Of a stretch of 64,000 bases of DNA, positions 9,800 to 52,044 are shown one piece after another. The position numbers and the translations under genes were made by a program. The stretch's first letter is position 1. Each line of letters begins with the position of its first letter. Source of the stretch: Oculina patagonica. Taxonomy: Eukaryota. The notes beneath the pieces are model-generated. The model searched no databases. It was not told where the DNA came from and saw only the letters and a list, made by a program, of their open reading frames with translations. The DNA lies in NCBI RefSeq assembly GCF_052425735.1, contig NC_135758.1:34844001-34908000 (forward strand), given 5' to 3'.

Positions 9800-10555
9800 G
9801 TAAAACTTTAAATATCTATATTTCGCTCTGATAAGTTGTTCAACAATGGCACGAGTGTGGAACAAAGAAAACATGAGTCCCCGACGGGAATCGAATCCAT
9901 GGCCTCCCAGATAGCGGTTGGGCGCTCTAACCAACTGAGCTACGAGAGACTCATGGTAAGCTGGGCCATTTACTAGGTTGATATGTGACACGCGTCCTGT
10001 GTCATTGTTGAACAACTTTTCGTCATTTATGTACCATAAAGAATTTCGTTATTTATGTAGGACGTATGTCACATATCAACCTAGTAGATGGCCCGGCTCA
10101 CCACGGGTCTCTCGTAGCTCAGTTGGTTAGAGCGCCCAACCGGTATCTGGGAGGCCATTGGTTCGATTTCCGCCAGGGATTCAGAATTTTTCTTTGTCCC
10201 ATGCTCGTGTCATTGTTGAAAAATTCATCTTCATTATTGATCACCGAGCTTAAAATTGACCAAATTTATTTTTTACTACACACTTGATAATTAGGACATT
10301 GCTGATCCTAGCAGTATGCAGGACGCGTGTCACATGTCAATCTTGTAAATGGCCCACTCACCATGAGTCTCTCGTAGCTCAGTTGGTTAGTAGCTCAACC
10401 GGTATCTGGGAGGCCATGGGGTCGATTCCCGTCGGGGACTCAGATGTTTTTTTTTTTTTTGCCCCATCACGCTCGTGTTACTGTTGAACAACTTACCTTC
10501 ATTATTTATCACCGAGCTTAAAATTCACCCCATCTTTGTTATTTACTACACACTA
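9800..10555. repeat. Three copies of a ~260-bp repeat with an internal tRNA-like module: one inverted copy (~9800-10000, -) and two tandem copies (~10055-10555, +)
   Basis: CTCTCGTAGCTCAGTTGGTTAG at 10109 and 10369 (period 260), with its reverse complement at ~9927-9948. B-box-like GGTTCGATT. The anticodon arm is non-canonical. Confidence 0.85.
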
Positions 10556-29000: not shown

Positions 29001-32000
29001 CCCCAGGAGCCGCGTGACCCGCCCCAGTTCGATGTTGTTTTTCGCAGAACCCAGCAGAAAAGAAGTGGAGTAGGGTCGCTCAAGTTGAGTGGAGCCGTGA
29101 GACGCCCCGCACCAATAGGAGAGTGAGGGAGGGGCGACGGGCGACACGAGATTGCGCCCCGTCCCAGGGAGGAGGAGGGGGGGGGAGGGGAGCGGCGGAC
29201 CGTGAGGTCCCCCCGGAAAGAGACGGAGAGAAGGGTCCAGGAGGTTCTCGCCACGTGTAATATCCTCTATTTACACGTAATTAGGTACAAGTTTTTTTCT
29301 TAAATTGTGGTTTTGAAATTTACTTGAAATGTAATCAGTTCACATGTTATCTAAAATCTAACCTTTAAACTTGTTAAAATACGAAATGTGCTTAAGCCTT
29401 AGTTCTTAAAGAATAAAAAGTATTGAAAACACCTATATACCTAAATGTCCAAGTAGTATGAAAAATAAATAGGTTTACATGTATCACATTTTCCTTTTTT
29501 AAATATACATGTACAATCAAGACTATATGCTATGTACATACCATTTCCAAACCAGAGTAGAACTTGTAAAACAGGTTTAGCAGTGCAGCCTGAGGGGCAG
29601 ACCACAGCGGCATCACCACAGACTGCACACCAGCTGCCAAGAGAGCTGTTGCCAAATGGAAGCTTGCATGCTTTAATTGACAATACTGGTGGCCACACCC
29701 ACAACATGCATTCAACACGACAAGCTTAGTTGACACTTTCAACAGAGCAATGTCTGACACCGTAACCAAGAACGACTCTTTTGATGAAGGGTTGCCATGG
29801 TGATGAATTGCCGGGGACAGTGCTATGGATGCCTCTGGCCAGCTTCCATATGTCGCCAAATGAACCACAGATGTTTCAGGCAGCGTCTTCAGGAAGTGTT
29901 CCTTGGTTGCTTGGCAACCACTGATTGGATCCACCCCTAGCAGCGAAGCAATCATGTTTACCTCCTCTTCTGCTAGATCTGATTGGTTCTTTGGACTCCA
30001 GATCTTTCCATTGAAATCTACACTTGTAATCTCTGGATTTCCTTGTACAAGAATCTTTGGAGAATCTTGCACTTGGTTTTTAGCATTGGGTGAATGTTCG
30101 GCTGCTTTGGTTTTCTGTGAAACTGCTCTAATACAAGGTAGAATGCGGACATTAAACTCTTCATGCAAGAACTTCCCTTCTTGGTCTTGCAAACAAGGAA
30201 AAGGAACTGAATTAACTTCCAGATCTGGAATAATTACAAGTTCATTAACACCATTCCCAAGTTCAATTTTCAGCTCATCCTCCACTTGACTCAAAAGCAA
30301 ATGATACAACTTTTGAAGTGGTGTGAGTTTAGTAGAGTAAAGGAACTCACAAGAGTAGCAAGATTTTTGGCTCTTCATTTCATCTGATGACTCACTGAGC
30401 TTTCCCGTAACTGCATCTGGTAATGCTCGATGGTCACAATTGTAGCTTCCTTTGCAAGTACCGTGTAGCTCTTCGATGCACAATTTAATTTTGTTAACAA
30501 AGGTAGAATGACCACAGCTCTTGTGCCAGTGACATTTCACAATGCCTTTCCCTGGCGACAGCATCCACAAGAGGAAACCAGATGGAATTGTAGAGAAGAA
30601 CAAAAGTATTGCTTGTTGAGAGTTAACAATGTCAACAATATCCTTTGCTGAGTATGGCGTGACAAGAGGTTCAGAAGACAGTGATAATGAGGACTCTGCC
30701 ATTGCAAGAATGTTCTGATGTCTTAAAATGTTAACAAGAATTCTTGATCTACAATGTTCAGCAATTTCCAATGCCTCCTCTTCTAAATTCATTTCAATTA
30801 AAGCCTCTTGCAAGTCCTTGTAACACTGATCCAGCTTTTCAAGCAAAGGATCTTTATAAATCAAACTCTTTCCATACTTTGACAACAGTTTGTCTTCTAA
30901 GACTGGAATGGCCTTGTTGAAGTACTGCCAAGAGGTTTCAAAATTTCTCATCGATTTTGTTATCTGCGCAAGGGCAAGCCTGCACTCTAACTCCTCTTCC
31001 AAATCACTGTGCTCCACTGCCAACTTCAAACACATCTCGTAATAATATTGAGCATGGTGAAACTGATGAAGCTCCCTGTAGCATGCGGCAACAAGGCTGA
31101 ATGCTTTGTACTCCAGCTCCTGCATCTTGTTCACCCTGGCCAGCTGAAGGTGCTGCTCAAAATAACTAAGAGCTTTGGTGTGTTCGCCCATGAGTTTATA
31201 CAGACATCCAAAGTTCCTAAATGCCATAAGTTCTGAGACTTTATCATTCAAGCTCTGTGCAAGCTGCAAGTGCTGCTCATGATTGACAGTTGCCAATTTA
31301 AAGCTCCCCATGTTTGCATATACTGTGCCGACGTTACCATAGGCATAAGCTGCACCGTGACGATCATCAAACTTTTTACAAAGCTGCAGCTCAATTTTGT
31401 GGCATTCCAAAGATTTTTCGTAGTTTCCTTGTAAGAGTTCAAGATCACCAAGGTTTGCATATGCTGTGGTCAGGTTCTCTTGGTCAATAAACTTCAACAC
31501 TTCCATGTACTCCTGTGCATGGACCAAAGCTTTCTTGTAGTCTCCCATGAGTTTGTAGGCTGCAGATAAGTTCCATACTGCTCTACGTTCAACATCACTG
31601 TTCCAGTATTCCTGGTACGTTTCTCTGTCCTCGTTGCTATTTTGCAGATCTCTTCCAACTGCTAACAGCTTGCCATTGTAAGACACAGCTTGGACATACT
31701 GTGTGAGTGTGTGATAGATATTTGCAAGTTTTACGTAAGACTTGATTTCATATTCTCTGTCGTTGAAATCTAAAGCTATGGAAAGACACTTTCTTGCAAC
31801 AGACAGTGCTTCAGTGTAATGGTACAGGCTGTAATGAGCTTCACTCAAGATGAGCAGCGCCATCATCACTGCTCTGCTATTCTGGGATGACACTCCACCA
31901 TGATCCACACTCTTTCTCCCATCTCCAAATACCTGGCTACCAGTTGCGAGATATATAGATGAAAACCCAGAGACTGGATTGGGAAGTGTTGACTGCAACT

Positions 32001-33903
32001 CATCAGCAACATGGTTGCAACTTGCAGGATCCTGGTCTGTCTCCTTTAAATCTTTGTTACCAAAAAGGTTTGCAATGCTCGCTTGTGAATACAACAGCTG
32101 TTCATTCCAGCCGTAATGTGCTTTCAAAGCTGTTGAGATGACACTGATGCAGATTTTGTAATTTCCAGTTTCGTACAACCTTTTTCCAAGTTGAACAAAT
32201 CTCTCAAATTTTTGAAAGCTTGCACCTGAAATTAATCAGTTAAAATTAATTTGAGATTTTTTTTTTATTATAAATAAAGATACCCTTTAGCTAAATCCTT
32301 AGTAGTGAATTTAGTGAGCAATGGAAAATCCTGGAGAGGAGGCTTGAAAAGATTCAATTTAGGTGTTGTGAATCTCTGATCGACATTTATATAGTAACAC
32401 TCAAAGAAAGAAATTTACCTGTAACTTATATGGTATGTATTACGTACGTATCATGTATAAATAAAAGATAATGCTCAGGTCTAAAATTAATGACGTCCTT
32501 GCACATCTCTGTTACCTTTTGCCAAGCCACCCCTTTTTAATTTTGGCTGAATTATAAATTATCATCAAGTTACACCCGGGGGGGGGGGGGGGTCTCTTTT
32601 TGGGGGTTTAATTTTTTTTTTTTTTTTTTTTTTTTTATAAAAAGAATGGGGGGGGGGCCCCCCCCCCCCCCCCCCCCCCCCACACCCTTCTTCCCTGCAG
32701 ATACTAAAGGTAAACTAAAGTATTCCACACCTATTCAGTTCCTTTACTTTTAATTCTTTATCTAGGGATCACAAATCTTACCTTGGTCGGAGAGAGTGAG
32801 CTCCTCTGTTTCTGACATTTGACAGATACATCCAACAGCTTCAATAATCCTTAACAGAAGCTCAGTAGGCTGTGCTGTGTCCAACTCATAAGCCTTGAGG
32901 TACGACTTTAAACATTCTCTGTAGTTTCCAAGGTTTTCAAGTGAGACAGCTCTCAAGAAGTGGCCCTGCAGACCAAATTATATTGATAACTATTAACCGG
33001 TCACGGTCTATAGCTACCTAAGGGCCCAAAAAAGGCGGTGAGAGAGGAGTGGAAAGGGTACACATTATAGTGAACAAGACAGAGAGGTCTTACCTGAAAG
33101 GGGTACCTCTTTCAGGCTGGAGGTGTATATGTTGTGGTTTAACTTTATCTTTGGTTTAAAATTTCTCAAACCAGTTTGATTTTTACTATCATTTCACATT
33201 TATTATCACGATCTGAAATAATGGCAAATGGAAATCAGAGCAGTTTGAAAAATTTTAAAGCAACATTTACCATAACCAGCAAACGCTAGTCATGTAGTTA
33301 AGTATCTCAGCTAATTATTAAAAAAAAAAAAACATTGCCAGTTCTTTAATTTAGCAACTTTATTAAGAGTTAAGCTTTGGTTTGCAAGTCTAATTAACAA
33401 TGAATCCAAAAAGTTCTTACCTTTGGTTTGTGTGGAATGATACTTATAAGACTTTCAGCATCTTTCTTGGATTCATTAAACATGCCTAACTTGGCATATA
33501 CTGCTGATCTACAGCCAAGAACATCTTCATCATCAGGCGACAGGGTCAAAGCATCAGAGTAGAAACTGATGGCTTGAAGGAACTGGTCATTTTGAAATGC
33601 TTTATCACCCTTGATGGAAAGTGCTTTGAACTGAAAATTTATACAAATTTAGTTTTTCTTTCATTTTAATAAAACCACCAAATGAAATCTTAGCATACTT
33701 GGCTAAGTCCTTCTCTCTGCAGTAAAAGAACGATCTATTAATTATCAATTATTTTAATTAATTATAATTGATATTTATAAAAAAAAATAATAATTGATAT
33801 TTATTAGACTACATGCAGAGTTTTTTTTGAATGAATAGTATGAGGACTGTGTTGATTATATTCTCTTTAAAGTTGGAATGGGGAAATGGTGTTTGTTTTT
33901 TTT

Positions 33904-34530: not shown

Positions 34531-35060
34531 ACTTGAAATGACTTTTTTGAAAAAATAATAAGTTCAAGAGACTATCAAGGAATTCAACAAGTCAACTACT
34601 TTAGAAACCACAAAATGATAGCCATTTGCAGAAGAAAATTGGAAAAAGGAAAAACCTAATTGAGATTTTCAACTTATTAAACTTAAATTTGTATAGTTCA
34701 TTGAATAAAAAGACAACATTATCACCAATAATCACATAAACTCCACATAAATAGTCTTGTTTACAATCTGACACGATCACTCCGCCATCTTGATTTGCTT
34801 AGCAACCAACCATACTCGGCCCTAGTCTCTTTCCTTCAAATTAGTAGCGCCTTGCAAGAATTAGCCTTTTGCCTGCTCATAAGTGTTAAATTTTTAATAA
34901 GACTCTTTTCTTTTGATTTTAAGACCATTTCACTCGACAAAGGTGCACCTTACCTCAAGCCACATTGAATTATACGTCTGTGCGACTTCGTGAAACGAAA
35001 TCGCTATTTCATTGTTCAACTACCCAAAGATTCCGTGGTTTCATTGTCTTCAACAAAACT

Positions 35061-35906
35061 ATGGCAGCTAAACGGATTTTAGCGATCATTCTTGTTTTGT
35101 CTCTGGGTTTCTTTTGTTTTCTCAAAAGCGAGGAAGTAGCGACAGATGGCGACTTGGATGACTTCCGAAAGTGGTTTGATGACCACGGTGGAAGATGCCG
35201 TTGCAGATTCATGAGAAACAAAGACTACAAGTTCACTGCGGTGGCTGACAGACGGATTGTGGAAAAGGAGTCAATTCTTATGGTCCCTCAGTCTCTACTT
35301 GTAAATTCTGCCACTGTTGAAAGGTACCATATCATTATTTCCAGTTATCATTAAAATCTGATTGCTATTTATGTGGAACAAGAATTGTTTCCTCTTTAAA
35401 ATCAAAGGTAGATCAGGGAACTTTTTACAGTAGTGAGTTTGTGGTGAAGCTGAAAACGTGCTTTGACCTTGTTAGTTAAGTCACTGATCATGTGTGACAG
35501 TACATGGTGCCCTCAAAAGTACCACAGGTAAAGCCTGACTTGGTGGTACCGTTAACAAAAACAAAAACTCCCAAAATATCCAAATCTGGGAGATTTCTAA
35601 TTTCATGTTAAATTACCTCTTGAAGAAGCCAGAAAATAGTGAAAAATAGTCAACCATAAAATTAAAAAAAAAACACTTTAAATAATCAAAATTCTCCCTT
35701 GTATTATTCAAAATATACCAACAATAAGTGTAAAACTCGGTAGGTATTTCTAGCACTTTTGTTTTCCAGTGGGTTGAAGTGACCTGTACAGGAGACTGGG
35801 AGATCTGGCCTTTATCCAGGAAACTCCCAGATAATCTAGAGCAGCTGGCATGTGAACTTTAAGTTGTGTCTCCCAGCCAGAAAAAAAAAAAAAAAAAAAA
35901 AAAAAA

Positions 35907-35939
<33 letters not shown>

Positions 35940-36994
35940 TATTTTTAGCCTTGTAATTTTTGCAATCCATTTAATCTTAGCTGGTATCCAAAGCCACTTG
36001 TTACCAACAACACCTTAACAAATGTTTTTGTTTGAAGGAAAATATTCACAAACTTTTGTTTTTATTTCAGTTCAATGATAGGGCCAACCCTTGAGCAGTT
36101 TTCTCTTGTGGAACATCAGATCCTCAACCGTCCAGATTACATGGAGCGACGTGTGATGCAGTTGATGCAGTTGGCCGTATTTGTTCTCTATTCTGTTCAC
36201 ACAAGAGATGAACAGTGGCTTCCTTACTTCAAGATTCTTACAAATCATAAATGTGATGCACTGTGGATGTGGAGTGAAGAGGAGCTGAAAGAGCTTCAAG
36301 ATGAGAAATTGGCTCAGAGAGCTCTCAAGTGGAAGAAGATGGTTGATATGCTTGCTGCCAACATCACACCAAAGCTGAATAGCTTTGGCTTGTTTGCTGG
36401 AAAAGATCTTGATCAAGAGACTTTGGTAAGATTCCAATCAGAACTTTATTTTAAATTCATTACTGTAGTTGAAAAACAACTAGAAAAAAAAAACAACCTC
36501 TATGCCCCCCCACCCCCCCCCCCAAAAAGAAAAGAAAAGAAAAGAAGAAAAAATAATAAGGAGGACATGAGCCCATGACTTAGTGATAATGGAAAGGTGC
36601 AAATGTTCTACCAGATCAGCTATATATGAAGGCACTGGGAGCAAGCTTCTTTATAATATTTTTGTTTTTGTCATCTATAACACTCATTTGGCGAGTAAAT
36701 ACTTTCAAATGGCCATTAATTATTTTCACGGTCGGCAGTTTAATAAAACACGCCATTTCTTTTTAGTGCTGAAACCACAGCACCGCAAGACGATTCATGA
36801 GTGAAACTAGGTGAATGCAGTCAGCGCCTGTGCCAGATATGGGCGAAGTTGGCGCATAGTTTGTCTCAATATTTATTTTCGGGTTCCTGATAAATTGTTA
36901 ATTCTATAAAATGGAAAAAAGGATATTCCCAAAATATCAAGGAAATTTTTCAATTTTTTTTTTTGTTTTTTGTTTTTTTAAGAATATTTTTTTT

Positions 36995-37045
<51 letters not shown>

Positions 37046-38994
37046 CTCCCCCCCCTCTTTTTTTTTTCCCCCCCCNNNNNNNNNNNNNNNNNNNNNNNNN
37101 NNNNNNNNNNNNNNNNNNNNNNNNNNNNNNNNNNNNNNNNNNNNNNNNNNNNNNNNNNNNNNNNNNNNNNNNNNNNNNNNNNNNNNNNNNNNNNNNNNNN
37201 NNNNNNNNTATGTGCTGTTAGCAGTAGGAAACACACCAGCAAGACATTGAGTAAACTTAAATTTATTCTCAATGACATGAAACTTGTGACTTAATTACCA
37301 GTGGTTTCTAGGACAATACCTAAATAAAGAAATATATTTCACTAAGAACAGAAATAACGGCATGCAGCAAAGGAAATACGATACAAATGAAAGAAACAAC
37401 ATATACCTGACGATTAAGATACATGGCGAAAACGGAGGTACAGCATAAACGAACATAGCTTCGTTAAACGTTAACTAACTTCTCTTCGCAGTTAAACAAT
37501 ATACATAAAATGCGTGAAAGACTAGACTATATAAACATGACTGCGGTAGGCTGGGCCGAAAGTCCACGGCCGATAAGGGATGGGTTCTTATATGTGCTGT
37601 GATATTTCAGATAAATGCAGTTTGTGCAGTCCAATCAAACAGTTTTAACGTGACAAGTGACACAGGACGCCCAGTCAGGACTTTGGTACCTGTAAGTTGT
37701 GCCATCTTTTTACATCTGATAACCATTGAATTTTAATTAACTATCATAAATACAAGCCCTGATAAGTATCTTCTGTAAGTTAATTCCCTGTCCCTGTTAA
37801 GCAAGGCTGGAGGCCAAGCACCCAAGGATTGTGATTTTATCAGCCCAAGAGTTCCTTTTGTTTTGGTTTTATGACACTCAATTGAAAACTACTCCATTAG
37901 GTATAGTTTGCAAAGACAATAAAAATTTTAGAGATTTATCACACAGAATGATAGTTAGAAAGTGTTCTTGACCGGTTCTTGACCCTATGTGCACGTCCTG
38001 TCATTGGGACCACAGCTTGTCATTTGGAAATGCAGCATGAGTTGCTTGGTAATCCATCTTGTCAAGGCTCAGGAACGTCTCGCCATGCGTAGCTTACAAT
38101 TTACGCGTAGTCGGCGCCTAGACAACCCCTATTTACATGCAGGCTTATAAAAATTGCCATCAACTTTTTTGGGCGTTACACTAAAAAGGATAAACGCTTT
38201 TTGCCCACGCTCGCGTTATATGATACTTATACTATAGGATTCTGTTCATCTTCAAAACTGTAGCACTTATCTAAGATTCGATACTGAATTCTGCTTTCCA
38301 GGGCTTAAATATGTTCACATATCGTCCCAATGCTGGAGGCACATGGTGGACCAAGGGTGATGCGCTTCGATACAGACATGTTAACGCCTCGGTTGAAGAA
38401 GGTGACGCAATCTTCATTGATGTCAACCCAACTGGCGACAGCACTCAAACACTTTTGGAATATGGCGTGTTCGTTCCTGAAGGAAGCAAATTCTTTAGTC
38501 CTTTACCAGAGCAAAACAGTCGAATGCGAAGGAGACTTATGGAGATGTTGAAACTCAAGAAAAGGGTAAAATACAGCGAGAAGTTCACTTTTAAGGCTGC
38601 TGGTCTTCCGCATTTCAGAATTCAAGCGCTTTCAGACAAAGAAGTGGACGAAATAGTGCGAGCAGGAAGCAATCCTAGTAAATTATCCGAGCTAAAAAAA
38701 GTATTCAGTAGTCCCTCGCTTCATGTTGAAAGCAACCCCTTGTACTCGTGCAAAGACGAAGTGGTCGCTTTAAATTTGTTGTCGTTGCATCTGCGAGATG
38801 AAATGTCAGGTAGATCTACAGGAATGCCACAAGACGAAGACATCTTGACCAAAGACATTCCTGCAAGGCTGCGCATTGCTGTGGAGTTTAGACTTAAGTT
38901 TAAGAAACTTGTTACTCACTATCTTGATATTACTAGCGCCCGAGCGATAGAGACAAAAAGAGAATGTCTGTCTAGGAAGAGGGACGAGCTGTAA
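35061..38994 (+). CDS. SET-domain protein (SETD3/Rubisco-LSMT class) with signal peptide and C-terminal RDEL, 463 aa; exons 35061-35323, 36071-36425, 37611-37691, 38302-38994
   Basis: N-terminus MAAKRILAIILVLSLGFFCFLKS. SET/iSET-like segments: FRKWFDDHGG, AVADRRIVEKESILMVPQSLLV, LAVFVLY..WLPYFKIL...LWMWSEEELKELQ, AVQSNSF, LVPGLNMF, GDAIFI...LLEYGVF, plus an LSMT substrate-binding-like tail (DEDIL...RLRIAVEFRLKFKKLV). GT-AG exons sum to 1392 nt. Confidence 0.85.
37076..37208. other. Assembly gap (N run) flanked by poly-T/C noise
   Basis: Run of n characters. Confidence 1.
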
Positions 38995-40654
38995 GATTGT
39001 TTTAACTGTCCAATCTGCTGTGCAAAAGGAGCGTTCAAACAAAAAACTTGATGTAAAACGAAGTCTAGGTACCGAAAACCTTTACAGTTTTTTAACATTT
39101 GAATTCACTGTAACTTTAGTCCACTTTAGTTTCGACTGAACTCTAAATCTTAAGTCCTCAGTTAGGTTTCATATTCTTAGTATAGGCTAGTGTTTAGTAA
39201 AATTTGGTACTGAGTTCTGCTTGTAGGGAACAGATATAAAAGAAAATTTATTTAGCTATTTATTTAAAAGTCGAATGTCATTATTTAATTAAATAAAATA
39301 AGTTTACTTAATATATCCCTGTGTTCAGTACACTTTTGAATTAACGAAATGTTTTTTGTCTTTCTTAATTTCTTCACGATTGACTGACCTAGCCTGTTCC
39401 AGGTGTTTGGTTTAATAGTCACTGAGGAACAACGCGAAGAACGGCGAGTGGAAGAAAGAAGGCGGAGGGTTTCGCCCTCCTTACAGGGTTGTTCAGGTCT
39501 TGGAAAATTGAAATTTTGTTTTTTTTTTTTTTTTTTTGTTTTTTTTTTTTTGTGAAAAGTATATAAAATTTTTTTTATAAAATAAAAAAGTTTTTTTTTT
39601 AAAAAGAAAAAAAAAATTTTATTTAAAAATTAATATAAAACCCTTCTAAACCGTCTATTCTTTTGCACTCCTCGCCGTAATTCGCTCTGCTCCGTAACTA
39701 ACCACACCTGGGCGTCTTGAAGGAGCAATACCTCGCCGGGTGCATCTTGCGCATTCGGTTAATTCGTCTCAAACTTCTCCAATCAACGCTTATCATATAT
39801 TGGCCCGTTTCCTTCAATTTAAATGTAGTTTTAAACGTTGCAAAAGTGTCTTAATAGTATACTTCCGTCGTAGCTCCTTTTAAGGTACGCTTCGCGAGGT
39901 TTTGGTAATGTTTTGCAAGTCTAGCTCCATCATCCTCCGGCCGGACCCGAGATCACACTTAGCATGCAAAAAAGCGTTGAAGACATTATAGAGCAGCCAA
40001 TATCATTTTCACCAATACCAACTTCCCAGGTTACAAGGTCCGTCACAACTGTTGAATCAGTTTACCTTTATCCTCCACCCCCCACCCCGCCCACAACCTA
40101 CAAGAAAACCATGGCGCTTAGAGGCAAGTTGACATTGTGGGGGGGTAACACTGGGATTCAGCAAAATATGTCGAAGCTTGCAGGTCACACTAATGAGGTT
40201 TAGAGAAAAAAATGAAGATCGAACATCTATATTTTACGTAAACAGAATAGAATAAAGTTTTTTATTTCTGTTCCTTGTATTAGAGGCATTTTGATAGGAT
40301 TTGAAGGATCAAGAGTCGCACGGGATATGTTGAATGAGTGGTTCTGAACTCATCTATCGAGAGAAAAAATTTTACATGTTTAACTTGACCCCTATCAGTG
40401 GTAATTTGCTTGTGATAGAAGTAGGAACTTATGTATAGTGTATGCCCGAAAAGATTAGTCGCGAACAGTACGATCCAATTCAAGCGATTGACCCAGTACA
40501 CAGAATGTATACCAATCAAAGGCCTAGATATAGCTAGCTGAGAAGTTCACCATTCCAGTGGCTGAGAAACGACCATCATTTAACTGGCAGATCCTCTCTG
40601 TCGTTTTTTTTTTCTCGGCCATCCTTCGTCCCCCCCCCAGTACATGACCAATGT

Positions 40655-51902: not shown

Positions 51903-52044
51903 NNNNNNNNNNNNNNNNNNNNNNNNNNNNNNNNNNNNNNNNNNNNNNNNNNNNNNNNNNNNNNNNNNNNNNNNNNNNNNNNNNNNNNNNNNNNNNNNNN
52001 NNNNNNNNNNNNNNNNNNNNNNNNNNNNNNNNNNNNNNNNNNNN
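51903..52044. other. Assembly gap (N run)
   Basis: Run of n characters. Confidence 1.

Follow-up and report, generated by a model that had tools for sequence, protein, structure and literature searches.

Introduction

Known SET-domain proteins are methyltransferases of the cytosol, the nucleus or plastids. The human actin histidine N-methyltransferase SETD3 (PDB 6ICT, 6MBK, 7W28) is cytosolic and carries neither a signal peptide nor a KDEL signal, while pea LSMT (PDB 1MLV, 1P0Y, 2H21) works in the chloroplast and has E-G-L-G, R222, D239-x-x-N242-H243, Y287 and F302 intact. A third relative, PAP7/pTAC14, is a plant plastid protein with a SET fold, known for its structural role as a subunit of a complex. 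Here we describe a gene of the coral Oculina patagonica, whose product appears to combine the fold of these proteins with a degenerate cofactor site and with signals of the endoplasmic reticulum (ER). The gene occupies positions 35061-38994 on the plus strand of a 64,000-nucleotide stretch (NCBI RefSeq assembly GCF_052425735.1, contig NC_135758.1, positions 34,844,001 to 34,908,000 of the forward strand), referred to below as the window, and all coordinates are given within it.

An earlier note, made from the letters of this DNA, had proposed that the gene encodes an ER-targeted pseudo-methyltransferase, in which all three canonical SET motifs are altered while the reading frame stays intact. 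The present analysis leads us to regard the protein as most likely a conserved ER-lumenal pseudo-methyltransferase that serves as a non-enzymatic binding protein. The pseudo-methyltransferase part of this reading is well supported in silico, and a binding or chaperone role is a plausible guess.

Loss of the Cofactor and Catalytic Residues

The contacts of SETD3 with S-adenosylhomocysteine (SAH), the product of the cofactor S-adenosylmethionine (SAM), are made by the side chains of R75, E104, R254, N278, Y313 and F327 and by the main chain of F106, H279 and S325; N278, H279 and F327 are common to SETD3, LSMT and SETD6, and the N278A change alone severely lowers the kcat of SETD3 (PMC6400499). 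We transferred this contact list to the coral protein through HMMER alignment to SETD3 and pea LSMT, with the index offsets verified at SETD3 E104, R254, N278/H279, Y313 and F327 and at LSMT R222, D239 and N242/H243. The equivalent sites in the window are as follows.

35226-35237, plus strand: motif I, where SETD3 E104-G-F106-G107 and LSMT E80-G-L-G correspond to Y56-K57-F58-T59
37638-37640, plus strand: the SAM-carboxylate Arg, SETD3 R254 and LSMT R222, replaced by N216
38308-38322, plus strand: the D-x-x-N-H motif, SETD3 D275, N278 and H279, reading N236-M-F-T239-Y240
38422-38424, plus strand: the catalytic and substrate-stacking Tyr, SETD3 Y313 and LSMT Y287, replaced by V274
38461-38469, plus strand: Y287-G-V289, in which Y287, equivalent to LSMT Y300 (SETD3 S325), is kept and V289 replaces the adenine-stacking Phe (SETD3 F327, LSMT F302)

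Beyond these sites, SETD3 R75 corresponds to T28, SETD3 W274 to L235, and the SETD3 substrate-pocket residue N256 to F218, a Phe as in LSMT (F224). None of the six side-chain SAM-contact and catalytic positions is canonical (0/6), and both glycines of GxG and the His of the NH motif are also replaced. Set against the LSMT series E-G-L-G, R222, D239-x-x-N242-H243, Y287 and F302, the coral protein reads Y-K-F-T, N, N-x-x-T-Y, V and V. The main-chain contacts F106, H279 and S325 of SETD3 map to F58, Y240 and Y287.

The strings on which the earlier note had based its claim were all located: DYKFTAVADRRI at residues 55-66, GDAIFIDVN at 267-275 and LVP/GLNMFTYRP at 231-242, the slash marking the junction of exons 3 and 4 that the last one straddles. 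The profile alignments to pea LSMT and human SETD3 place these three altered motifs as it had done, and the scaffold that it described as retained is present as VPQSLL (75-80), WLPY (137-140), WSEEEL (155-160) and LLEYG (284-288). The changes of R254 to N216 and of F327 to V289 are losses that the note had not listed.

The same substitutions recur across the family. The motif I glycines are absent from all nine sequences that cover the motif, and its columns vary among orthologues. The column of N216 reads N, N, N, S, S, H, R, S, S, N, with Arg only in Nematostella, and that of SETD3 N278 reads T, T, T, T, T, T, P, K, R, N, where T belongs to the corals, P to Nematostella and K, R and N to the other anemones. 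The H279 position holds Y, V or M, the F327 position V, L, A or T, and the position of the catalytic Tyr is V, M or L in 10/10 sequences. An internal control is given by the same genome, in which an exon of a canonical LSMT-class paralogue, SETD4-like by eye (G000:C9:18232351-18232689; L009:1465-2013, minus strand), reads FINYG...EYGF against FIDVN...EYGV here, its Tyr and Phe being kept. This paralogue exon appears to belong to the same domain family (PF09273 at 47.6 bits) and can be aligned to exon 4 of the coral gene, from which it differs further in that no secretory signals were seen in the single exon inspected. Taken on the aligned residues, canonical SAM binding and methyl transfer have probably been lost.

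Fold Class and Relatives

Assignment by Pfam on the four exon translations failed. With E values up to 1 allowed, the SET family (PF00856) matched neither the window exons nor any of the nine orthologues, which is in line with degenerate motifs, and the single signal was a sub-threshold one of PF09273 (Rubis-subs-bind) on exon 4, at 18.5 bits against a cut-off of 21.6. PF09273 was matched in 9/9 orthologues with a best E value of 1e-7, and precomputed PF09273 matches are also on record for the sea-anemone proteins. With phmmer, exon 2 alone reached pea LSMT at an E value of 7.7e-4, and exon 4 against the PDB sequences gave chance-level matches only. A profile of nine orthologues was more informative: searched with hmmsearch against the PDB sequences, it retrieved PAP7/pTAC14 at 1.2e-13, pea LSMT at 3.1e-11 and SETD3 at 2.6e-6, the alignment to SETD3 extending over residues 27-441.

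A structural model was made with AlphaFold2 for the closest orthologue, P0011, which is 86% identical without indels and stands in for the window protein (mean predicted local distance difference test score, pLDDT, 78; predicted template modelling score, pTM, 0.69). Foldseek places this model with LSMT and SETD3 at E values near 1e-17, with a template modelling (TM) score of 0.72 to SETD3. In VIA-align, SETD3 is reached at Z 25.1 over 406 residues with a root-mean-square deviation (rmsd) of 3.9, followed by LSMT (Z 24.9), SETD6 (Z 23.2) and PAP7 (Z about 22), and the next-best class, SMYD, reaches a Z of only 11. The SETD3 and LSMT alignments cover 385-406 residues over the model span 25-463, and the AlphaFold DB clusters and the ESM Atlas return the same class. 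The SET core, the iSET helical insert and the C-terminal helical substrate-binding domain are present in that order in the model. Judged on this model, the protein clearly belongs to the SETD3/LSMT/SETD6/PAP7 fold class, and the structural comparison to SETD3 and LSMT by which the earlier note wished its claim to be checked thus returns the same fold, at Z about 25.

The likeness to SETD3 is one of full-length three-part architecture (about 405 residues, rmsd 3.5-3.9) and of scaffold, since VPxxLL, W..PY and WSxxEL are common to both, at an identity of only about 15%. LSMT, which is among the best profile relatives with a solved structure, shares the C-terminal PF09273 domain with the orthologues and has its F224 and Y300 equivalents kept in the coral protein. 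PAP7, the top profile match, shares a QSRS-type strand with the Nematostella orthologue. Whether PAP7/pTAC14 sets a precedent for inactivity within the class was considered, and the idea was dropped because this protein keeps the LSMT active-site residues, which are reported as conserved, and is regarded as a true methyltransferase (PMC11561172).

Selection and Constraint

Pairwise dN/dS, the ratio of nonsynonymous to synonymous substitution rates, was computed by the Nei-Gojobori method on six coral coding sequences, that of the window and five transcript contigs, with dS between 0.5 and 1.9. The ratio is 0.11-0.21 for the whole protein. By region, it is about 0.4-1.0 in the putative signal peptide, 0.10-0.37 in SET plus iSET, and 0.06-0.10 in the C-terminal helical domain; values near 1 are usual for signal peptides. 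The protein is under strong purifying selection, its C-terminal substrate-binding-like domain being the most constrained part, and corals and sea anemones share 105 invariant positions.

The positions that matter for the cofactor behave otherwise. In an active enzyme, the cofactor and catalytic columns would be the most conserved. Across ten orthologues, the share of the commonest residue has a mean of 0.52 at the six side-chain contact positions against a background of 0.71 (permutation P = 0.018), and it is 0.55 at the nine canonical motif positions (permutation P = 0.015). The cofactor and catalytic positions are under relaxed constraint and are among the least constrained of the protein. 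Selection keeps the fold, and above all the C-terminal domain, but not the cofactor site. The loss of SAM-binding and catalytic residues in an intact, functional gene, as proposed in the earlier note, is borne out by the substitutions in all ten orthologues, by the relaxed constraint at those positions and by the purifying selection on the whole. A pseudogene, considered as another reading, was ruled out by the purifying dN/dS and by the spliced transcripts.

Several points weigh against the pseudoenzyme reading and have to be set beside this evidence. The pocket-lining aromatics F58, F218 and Y287 persist; Nematostella retains the Arg and Asp equivalents, and Actinostola the D and N of D-x-x-N-H; and main-chain SAM contacts cannot be judged from sequence. 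Family-invariant residues are numerous around the old site (P233, F238, P242, W248, W249, P276, G278, D279, S280, Q282), so the pocket may have been remodelled and need not be dead. Confidence in the P0011 model is low precisely at residues 241-246 and 274-286; the model was built on a nine-sequence alignment, and four of the five models had a pLDDT of about 50. Furthermore, the N-terminus was judged by hydrophobicity only, and the protein may have the topology of a signal anchor. The patchy ancestral residues would fit the remnant expected from stepwise decay of an active ancestor.

Should the protein still be an active SAM-dependent methyltransferase in the ER lumen, its cofactor would be held by main-chain contacts and by new invariant residues of the SET knot. 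The knot region is indeed well conserved overall, with a commonest-residue share of 0.81 for residues 221-240 and of 0.77 for residues 281-300, and the three kept aromatics named above speak in the same direction. Such an enzyme would nevertheless have replaced all three of N278, H279 and F327, and the replacing residues are inconstant within the family, unlike those of a new cofactor site. The former catalytic Tyr is aliphatic in every sequence, and we know of no SAM supply to the animal ER lumen, for which reason the loss of a SAM site after relocation to the ER would be unsurprising. SETD6 itself lacks two of the SETD3/LSMT contacts (PMC6400499), so that an incomplete contact set counts somewhat in favour of activity. 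The diatom BacSETs, SET proteins presumed to work in the secretory pathway, also lend it some support. On balance we hold persistent activity to be decidedly unlikely.

A related alternative is that the old active site was retooled for another small ligand or another chemistry, the new site being formed by W248-W249, P276-x-G-D-S-x-Q282, Q214 and S217. The new invariants cluster in sequence near the old motifs, and drift is seen at the former contact positions, as such a change would have it. Against this, the Pfam and PDB searches recognised no known catalytic motif, the strongest constraint falls on the C-terminal helical domain and not on the pocket, and the invariant residues could merely maintain the knot fold. 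We find a retooled pocket unlikely, and continue with the reading of a pseudoenzyme whose cofactor site was given up.

Secretory-Pathway Features

The relocation of this fold is suggested by features at both ends of the protein and between them.

35061-35126, plus strand: signal-peptide-like N-terminus, residues 1-22, with two basic residues followed by a 16-residue hydrophobic run
37647-37655, plus strand: N-x-T sequon N219-V-T221, invariant in 10/10 orthologues
38980-38991, plus strand: RDEL, residues 460-463, directly before the stop codon, a KDEL-type ER-retrieval signal

The best 12-residue Kyte-Doolittle window scores 3.0 at residues 6-17, and an equivalent hydrophobic N-terminal segment is found in 9/9 orthologues with a complete N-terminus. 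Six corals end in RDEL and three sea anemones in KDEL; Nematostella has GDEL, and D461, E462 and L463 are invariant throughout. Additional sequons at 185 and 261 are common to the corals, and others at 273 and 357 to the anemones. Five cysteines (48, 149, 211, 383 and 455) do not vary, and Cys46 occurs in 7/9. These secretory features fit a lumenal glycoprotein and are unexpected for a cytosolic SETD3-type enzyme; from them, the protein would be located in the ER lumen.

A secreted or membrane-anchored protein, not resident in the ER, would follow if the N-terminal helix acted as a signal anchor or if the retrieval signal were weak. The cleavage site is not obvious, and the GDEL of Nematostella is a non-classic variant, as this alternative would allow; RDEL or KDEL ends 9/10 orthologues, and the retrieval signal is argued to be used because the last four residues are conserved across corals and anemones. 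This alternative appears very improbable to us, and residence in the ER lumen is the location that we retain.

As a separate observation, the orthologues P0003, P0013, P0014 and P0017, from Nematostella and sea anemones, have an N-L-S sequon in the alignment columns of residues 273-275 of the window protein, where the corals have D-V-N. The Leu of this sequon occupies the former position of the catalytic Tyr. If the sequon is used, a glycan would be placed at the old active site.

Gene Model, Splicing and the Assembly Gap

The gene was read from the sequence and spliced in silico as four exons on the plus strand, in which every intron is GT-AG. The spliced coding sequence of 1392 nt yields 463 amino acids and a stop codon, and the 529-Mb assembly contains one copy of the gene.

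35061-35323, plus strand: exon 1, residues 1-87 and two bases of codon 88, profile positions 1-91; start codon, hydrophobic signal-like N-terminus and N-terminal SET strands including the degenerate motif I
36071-36425, plus strand: exon 2, last base of codon 88 and residues 89-206, profile positions 74-208; helical iSET insert, in which the scaffold motifs WLPY and WSEEEL are conserved
36426-37610, plus strand: intron 2, containing the assembly gap 37076-37208, which is flanked by long poly-T/poly-C tracts
37611-37691, plus strand: exon 3, residues 207-233, profile positions 207-234; strand matching LSMT RSRAF and SETD3 T-R254-Q-N256, here Q214-S-N216-S-F218, then N219-V-T221 and VRTLVP
38302-38994, plus strand: exon 4, residues 234-463 and stop, profile positions 233-464; remainder of the SET core, its NH and Tyr motifs degenerate, LSMT-substrate-binding-like C-terminal helical domain and RDEL

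Transcript contigs were taken from three public runs (X1, X2 and X5) of close relatives, organism A at about 95% identity and organism B at about 98.6%. The joint 35323 to 36071 is seen in a spliced contig of run X5, with GT..AG and no intervening letters. The joint 36425 to 37611 is seen in runs X1 and X2, where 1185 bases including the gap are skipped, again with GT..AG and no intervening letters, and the joint 37691 to 38302, likewise GT..AG without intervening letters, is present in three runs. One contig of X2, 1128 nt in length, reaches from exon 2 across exon 3 into exon 4. The orthologues are full-length (463-473 amino acids) in 9/10 cases and colinear with the model in 10/10, without an indel at the exon 2/3 junction, and the family profile, run against the genome of the window, gives exactly four exon matches that together cover positions 1-464.

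The assembly gap 37076-37208 is intronic and hides no coding sequence; therefore, the reading frame is unaffected. The earlier note had allowed that the NH and Tyr equivalents might lie in an exon hidden in this gap, a route that the direct exon 2-exon 3 joints of the spliced contigs, the colinear orthologues and the profile coverage close off. The broader suspicion, of an artefact of the gene model or of the assembly in which the true motifs sit in a gap exon or in an alternative isoform, draws on the position of the gap in intron 2, whose length in the assembly may not be the true one, and on a joint of low support. This joint, from 36424 to 36766, occurs in a single contig of run X5, with GT..AG and a shorter side of only 29 letters, and hints at an alternative piece in intron 2. 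The NH- and Tyr-equivalent positions are, however, present and aligned in exons 3-4, the four exons leave no part of the family profile uncovered, and the full-length orthologues include RefSeq models of Orbicella, Acropora, Nematostella, Exaiptasia and Actinia, with the same substitutions in 10/10. The alternative piece itself brings a stop codon after one residue. For the main isoform an artefact is already refuted, and overall we give it next to no chance.

The region of the alternative piece, 36766-36920 in intron 2 and upstream of the gap, carries transcript contigs from all three runs at a depth of 10-45, and other contigs there show strand-switch or go-back joints. Used as an exon, the piece reads TGC TGA, a single residue and then the stop codon, which leaves two readings for it, a poison exon or a repeat whose transcripts arise elsewhere. 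Long homopolymer tracts (A/T, C, T then C) lie in introns 1 and 2 at 35869-35950, 36472-36567 and 36939-37075; the last of these adjoins the assembly gap and is probably its cause.

Family Distribution

An exhaustive HMMER search of exon 4, which covers the C-terminal half only, against 1.84 billion representatives returned eight matches, all within the family and none outside Hexacorallia, and word-indexed searches contributed further members, again none of them outside Hexacorallia. The word-indexed search with the family profile brought up no distant relatives, a negative of no weight because such a search is blind to them. The orthologues include Orbicella faveolata LOC110042961, Acropora palmata LOC141892372, Nematostella vectensis LOC5506140 (A7SND2), Exaiptasia diaphana LOC110253017, Actinia tenebrosa LOC116294947 and an Actinostola protein, annotated as 'uncharacterized' or, automatically, as 'Rubisco LSMT substrate-binding domain-containing'. 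The window protein is 69-86% identical to those of corals and 45-52% identical to those of sea anemones. On these searches, the family appears restricted to Hexacorallia, the stony corals and sea anemones. A literature search for the locus names of the orthologues returned nothing relevant.

A further search of the literature, for ER-lumenal or KDEL-bearing SET-fold proteins in animals, found none. Nemoto et al. in 2020 reportedly described the diatom BacSETs as SET-domain proteins predicted to enter the secretory pathway. These are co-expressed with silica cell-wall genes, and are the only other secretory-pathway SET proteins that we found. They differ from the coral protein in being presumed active lysine methyltransferases on silaffin-type proteins, in an unrelated lineage.

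Proposed Role and Significance

In the mechanism that we propose, the protein would enter the ER through its N-terminal signal sequence, would be N-glycosylated and disulfide-bonded in the lumen, and, as a soluble protein, would be retrieved by the KDEL receptor via its RDEL end. The SET core, the iSET insert and the C-terminal substrate-binding domain would have been retained while the SAM site was abandoned, leaving a pseudoenzyme. Its working surface would most likely combine the groove that once took the protein substrate with the C-terminal helical domain, which is highly constrained, and these would bind one or more secretory-pathway proteins or peptides of hexacorals. Given that the gene appears restricted to Hexacorallia, which include the reef builders, its clients could point to hexacoral-specific secretory biology.

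If this is true, a cofactor-less ER-lumenal member of the SETD3/LSMT class, held under strong purifying selection from Nematostella to reef-building corals, would be a new example of how an enzyme fold can be put to use for binding in the secretory pathway. What would be new here is a pseudoenzyme branch of that class in a new compartment, since the sequences were already public but uncharacterised. The orthologues in Nematostella and Exaiptasia make functional work feasible.

A bolder version, to which we give a small but real chance, is that the SET knot was rebuilt around the new invariants (W248-W249, P276-x-G-D-S-x-Q282 and Q214/S217), yielding a non-canonical enzyme or a dedicated receptor, the first SET-fold factor inside the animal ER lumen. 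As a receptor, the protein would read a specific peptide or a modified side chain on hexacoral secretory proteins, by way of the groove that holds actin in SETD3.

Other Observations in the Window

Intron 3 contains, at 37852-37900, a motif of about 45 nt at which the read depth comes near 10,000 in RNA-like runs, with flanks that differ from contig to contig. It has at least 40 copies in the genome (162 first-look candidates) at 85-95% identity. An Rfam scan of 35000-39100 found no RNA family, and the deep pile of reads is therefore attributed to a dispersed repeat and not to a hosted small RNA. The motif looks like a dispersed short repeat, perhaps the core of a miniature inverted-repeat transposable element (MITE) or of a short interspersed nuclear element (SINE).

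Upstream of the gene, on the minus strand, an open reading frame of 882 amino acids at 29530-32178 shows tetratricopeptide (TPR)-like repeats by eye, and its C-terminal region might be CHAT-like. A second assembly gap, of 142 N, lies at 51903-52044.

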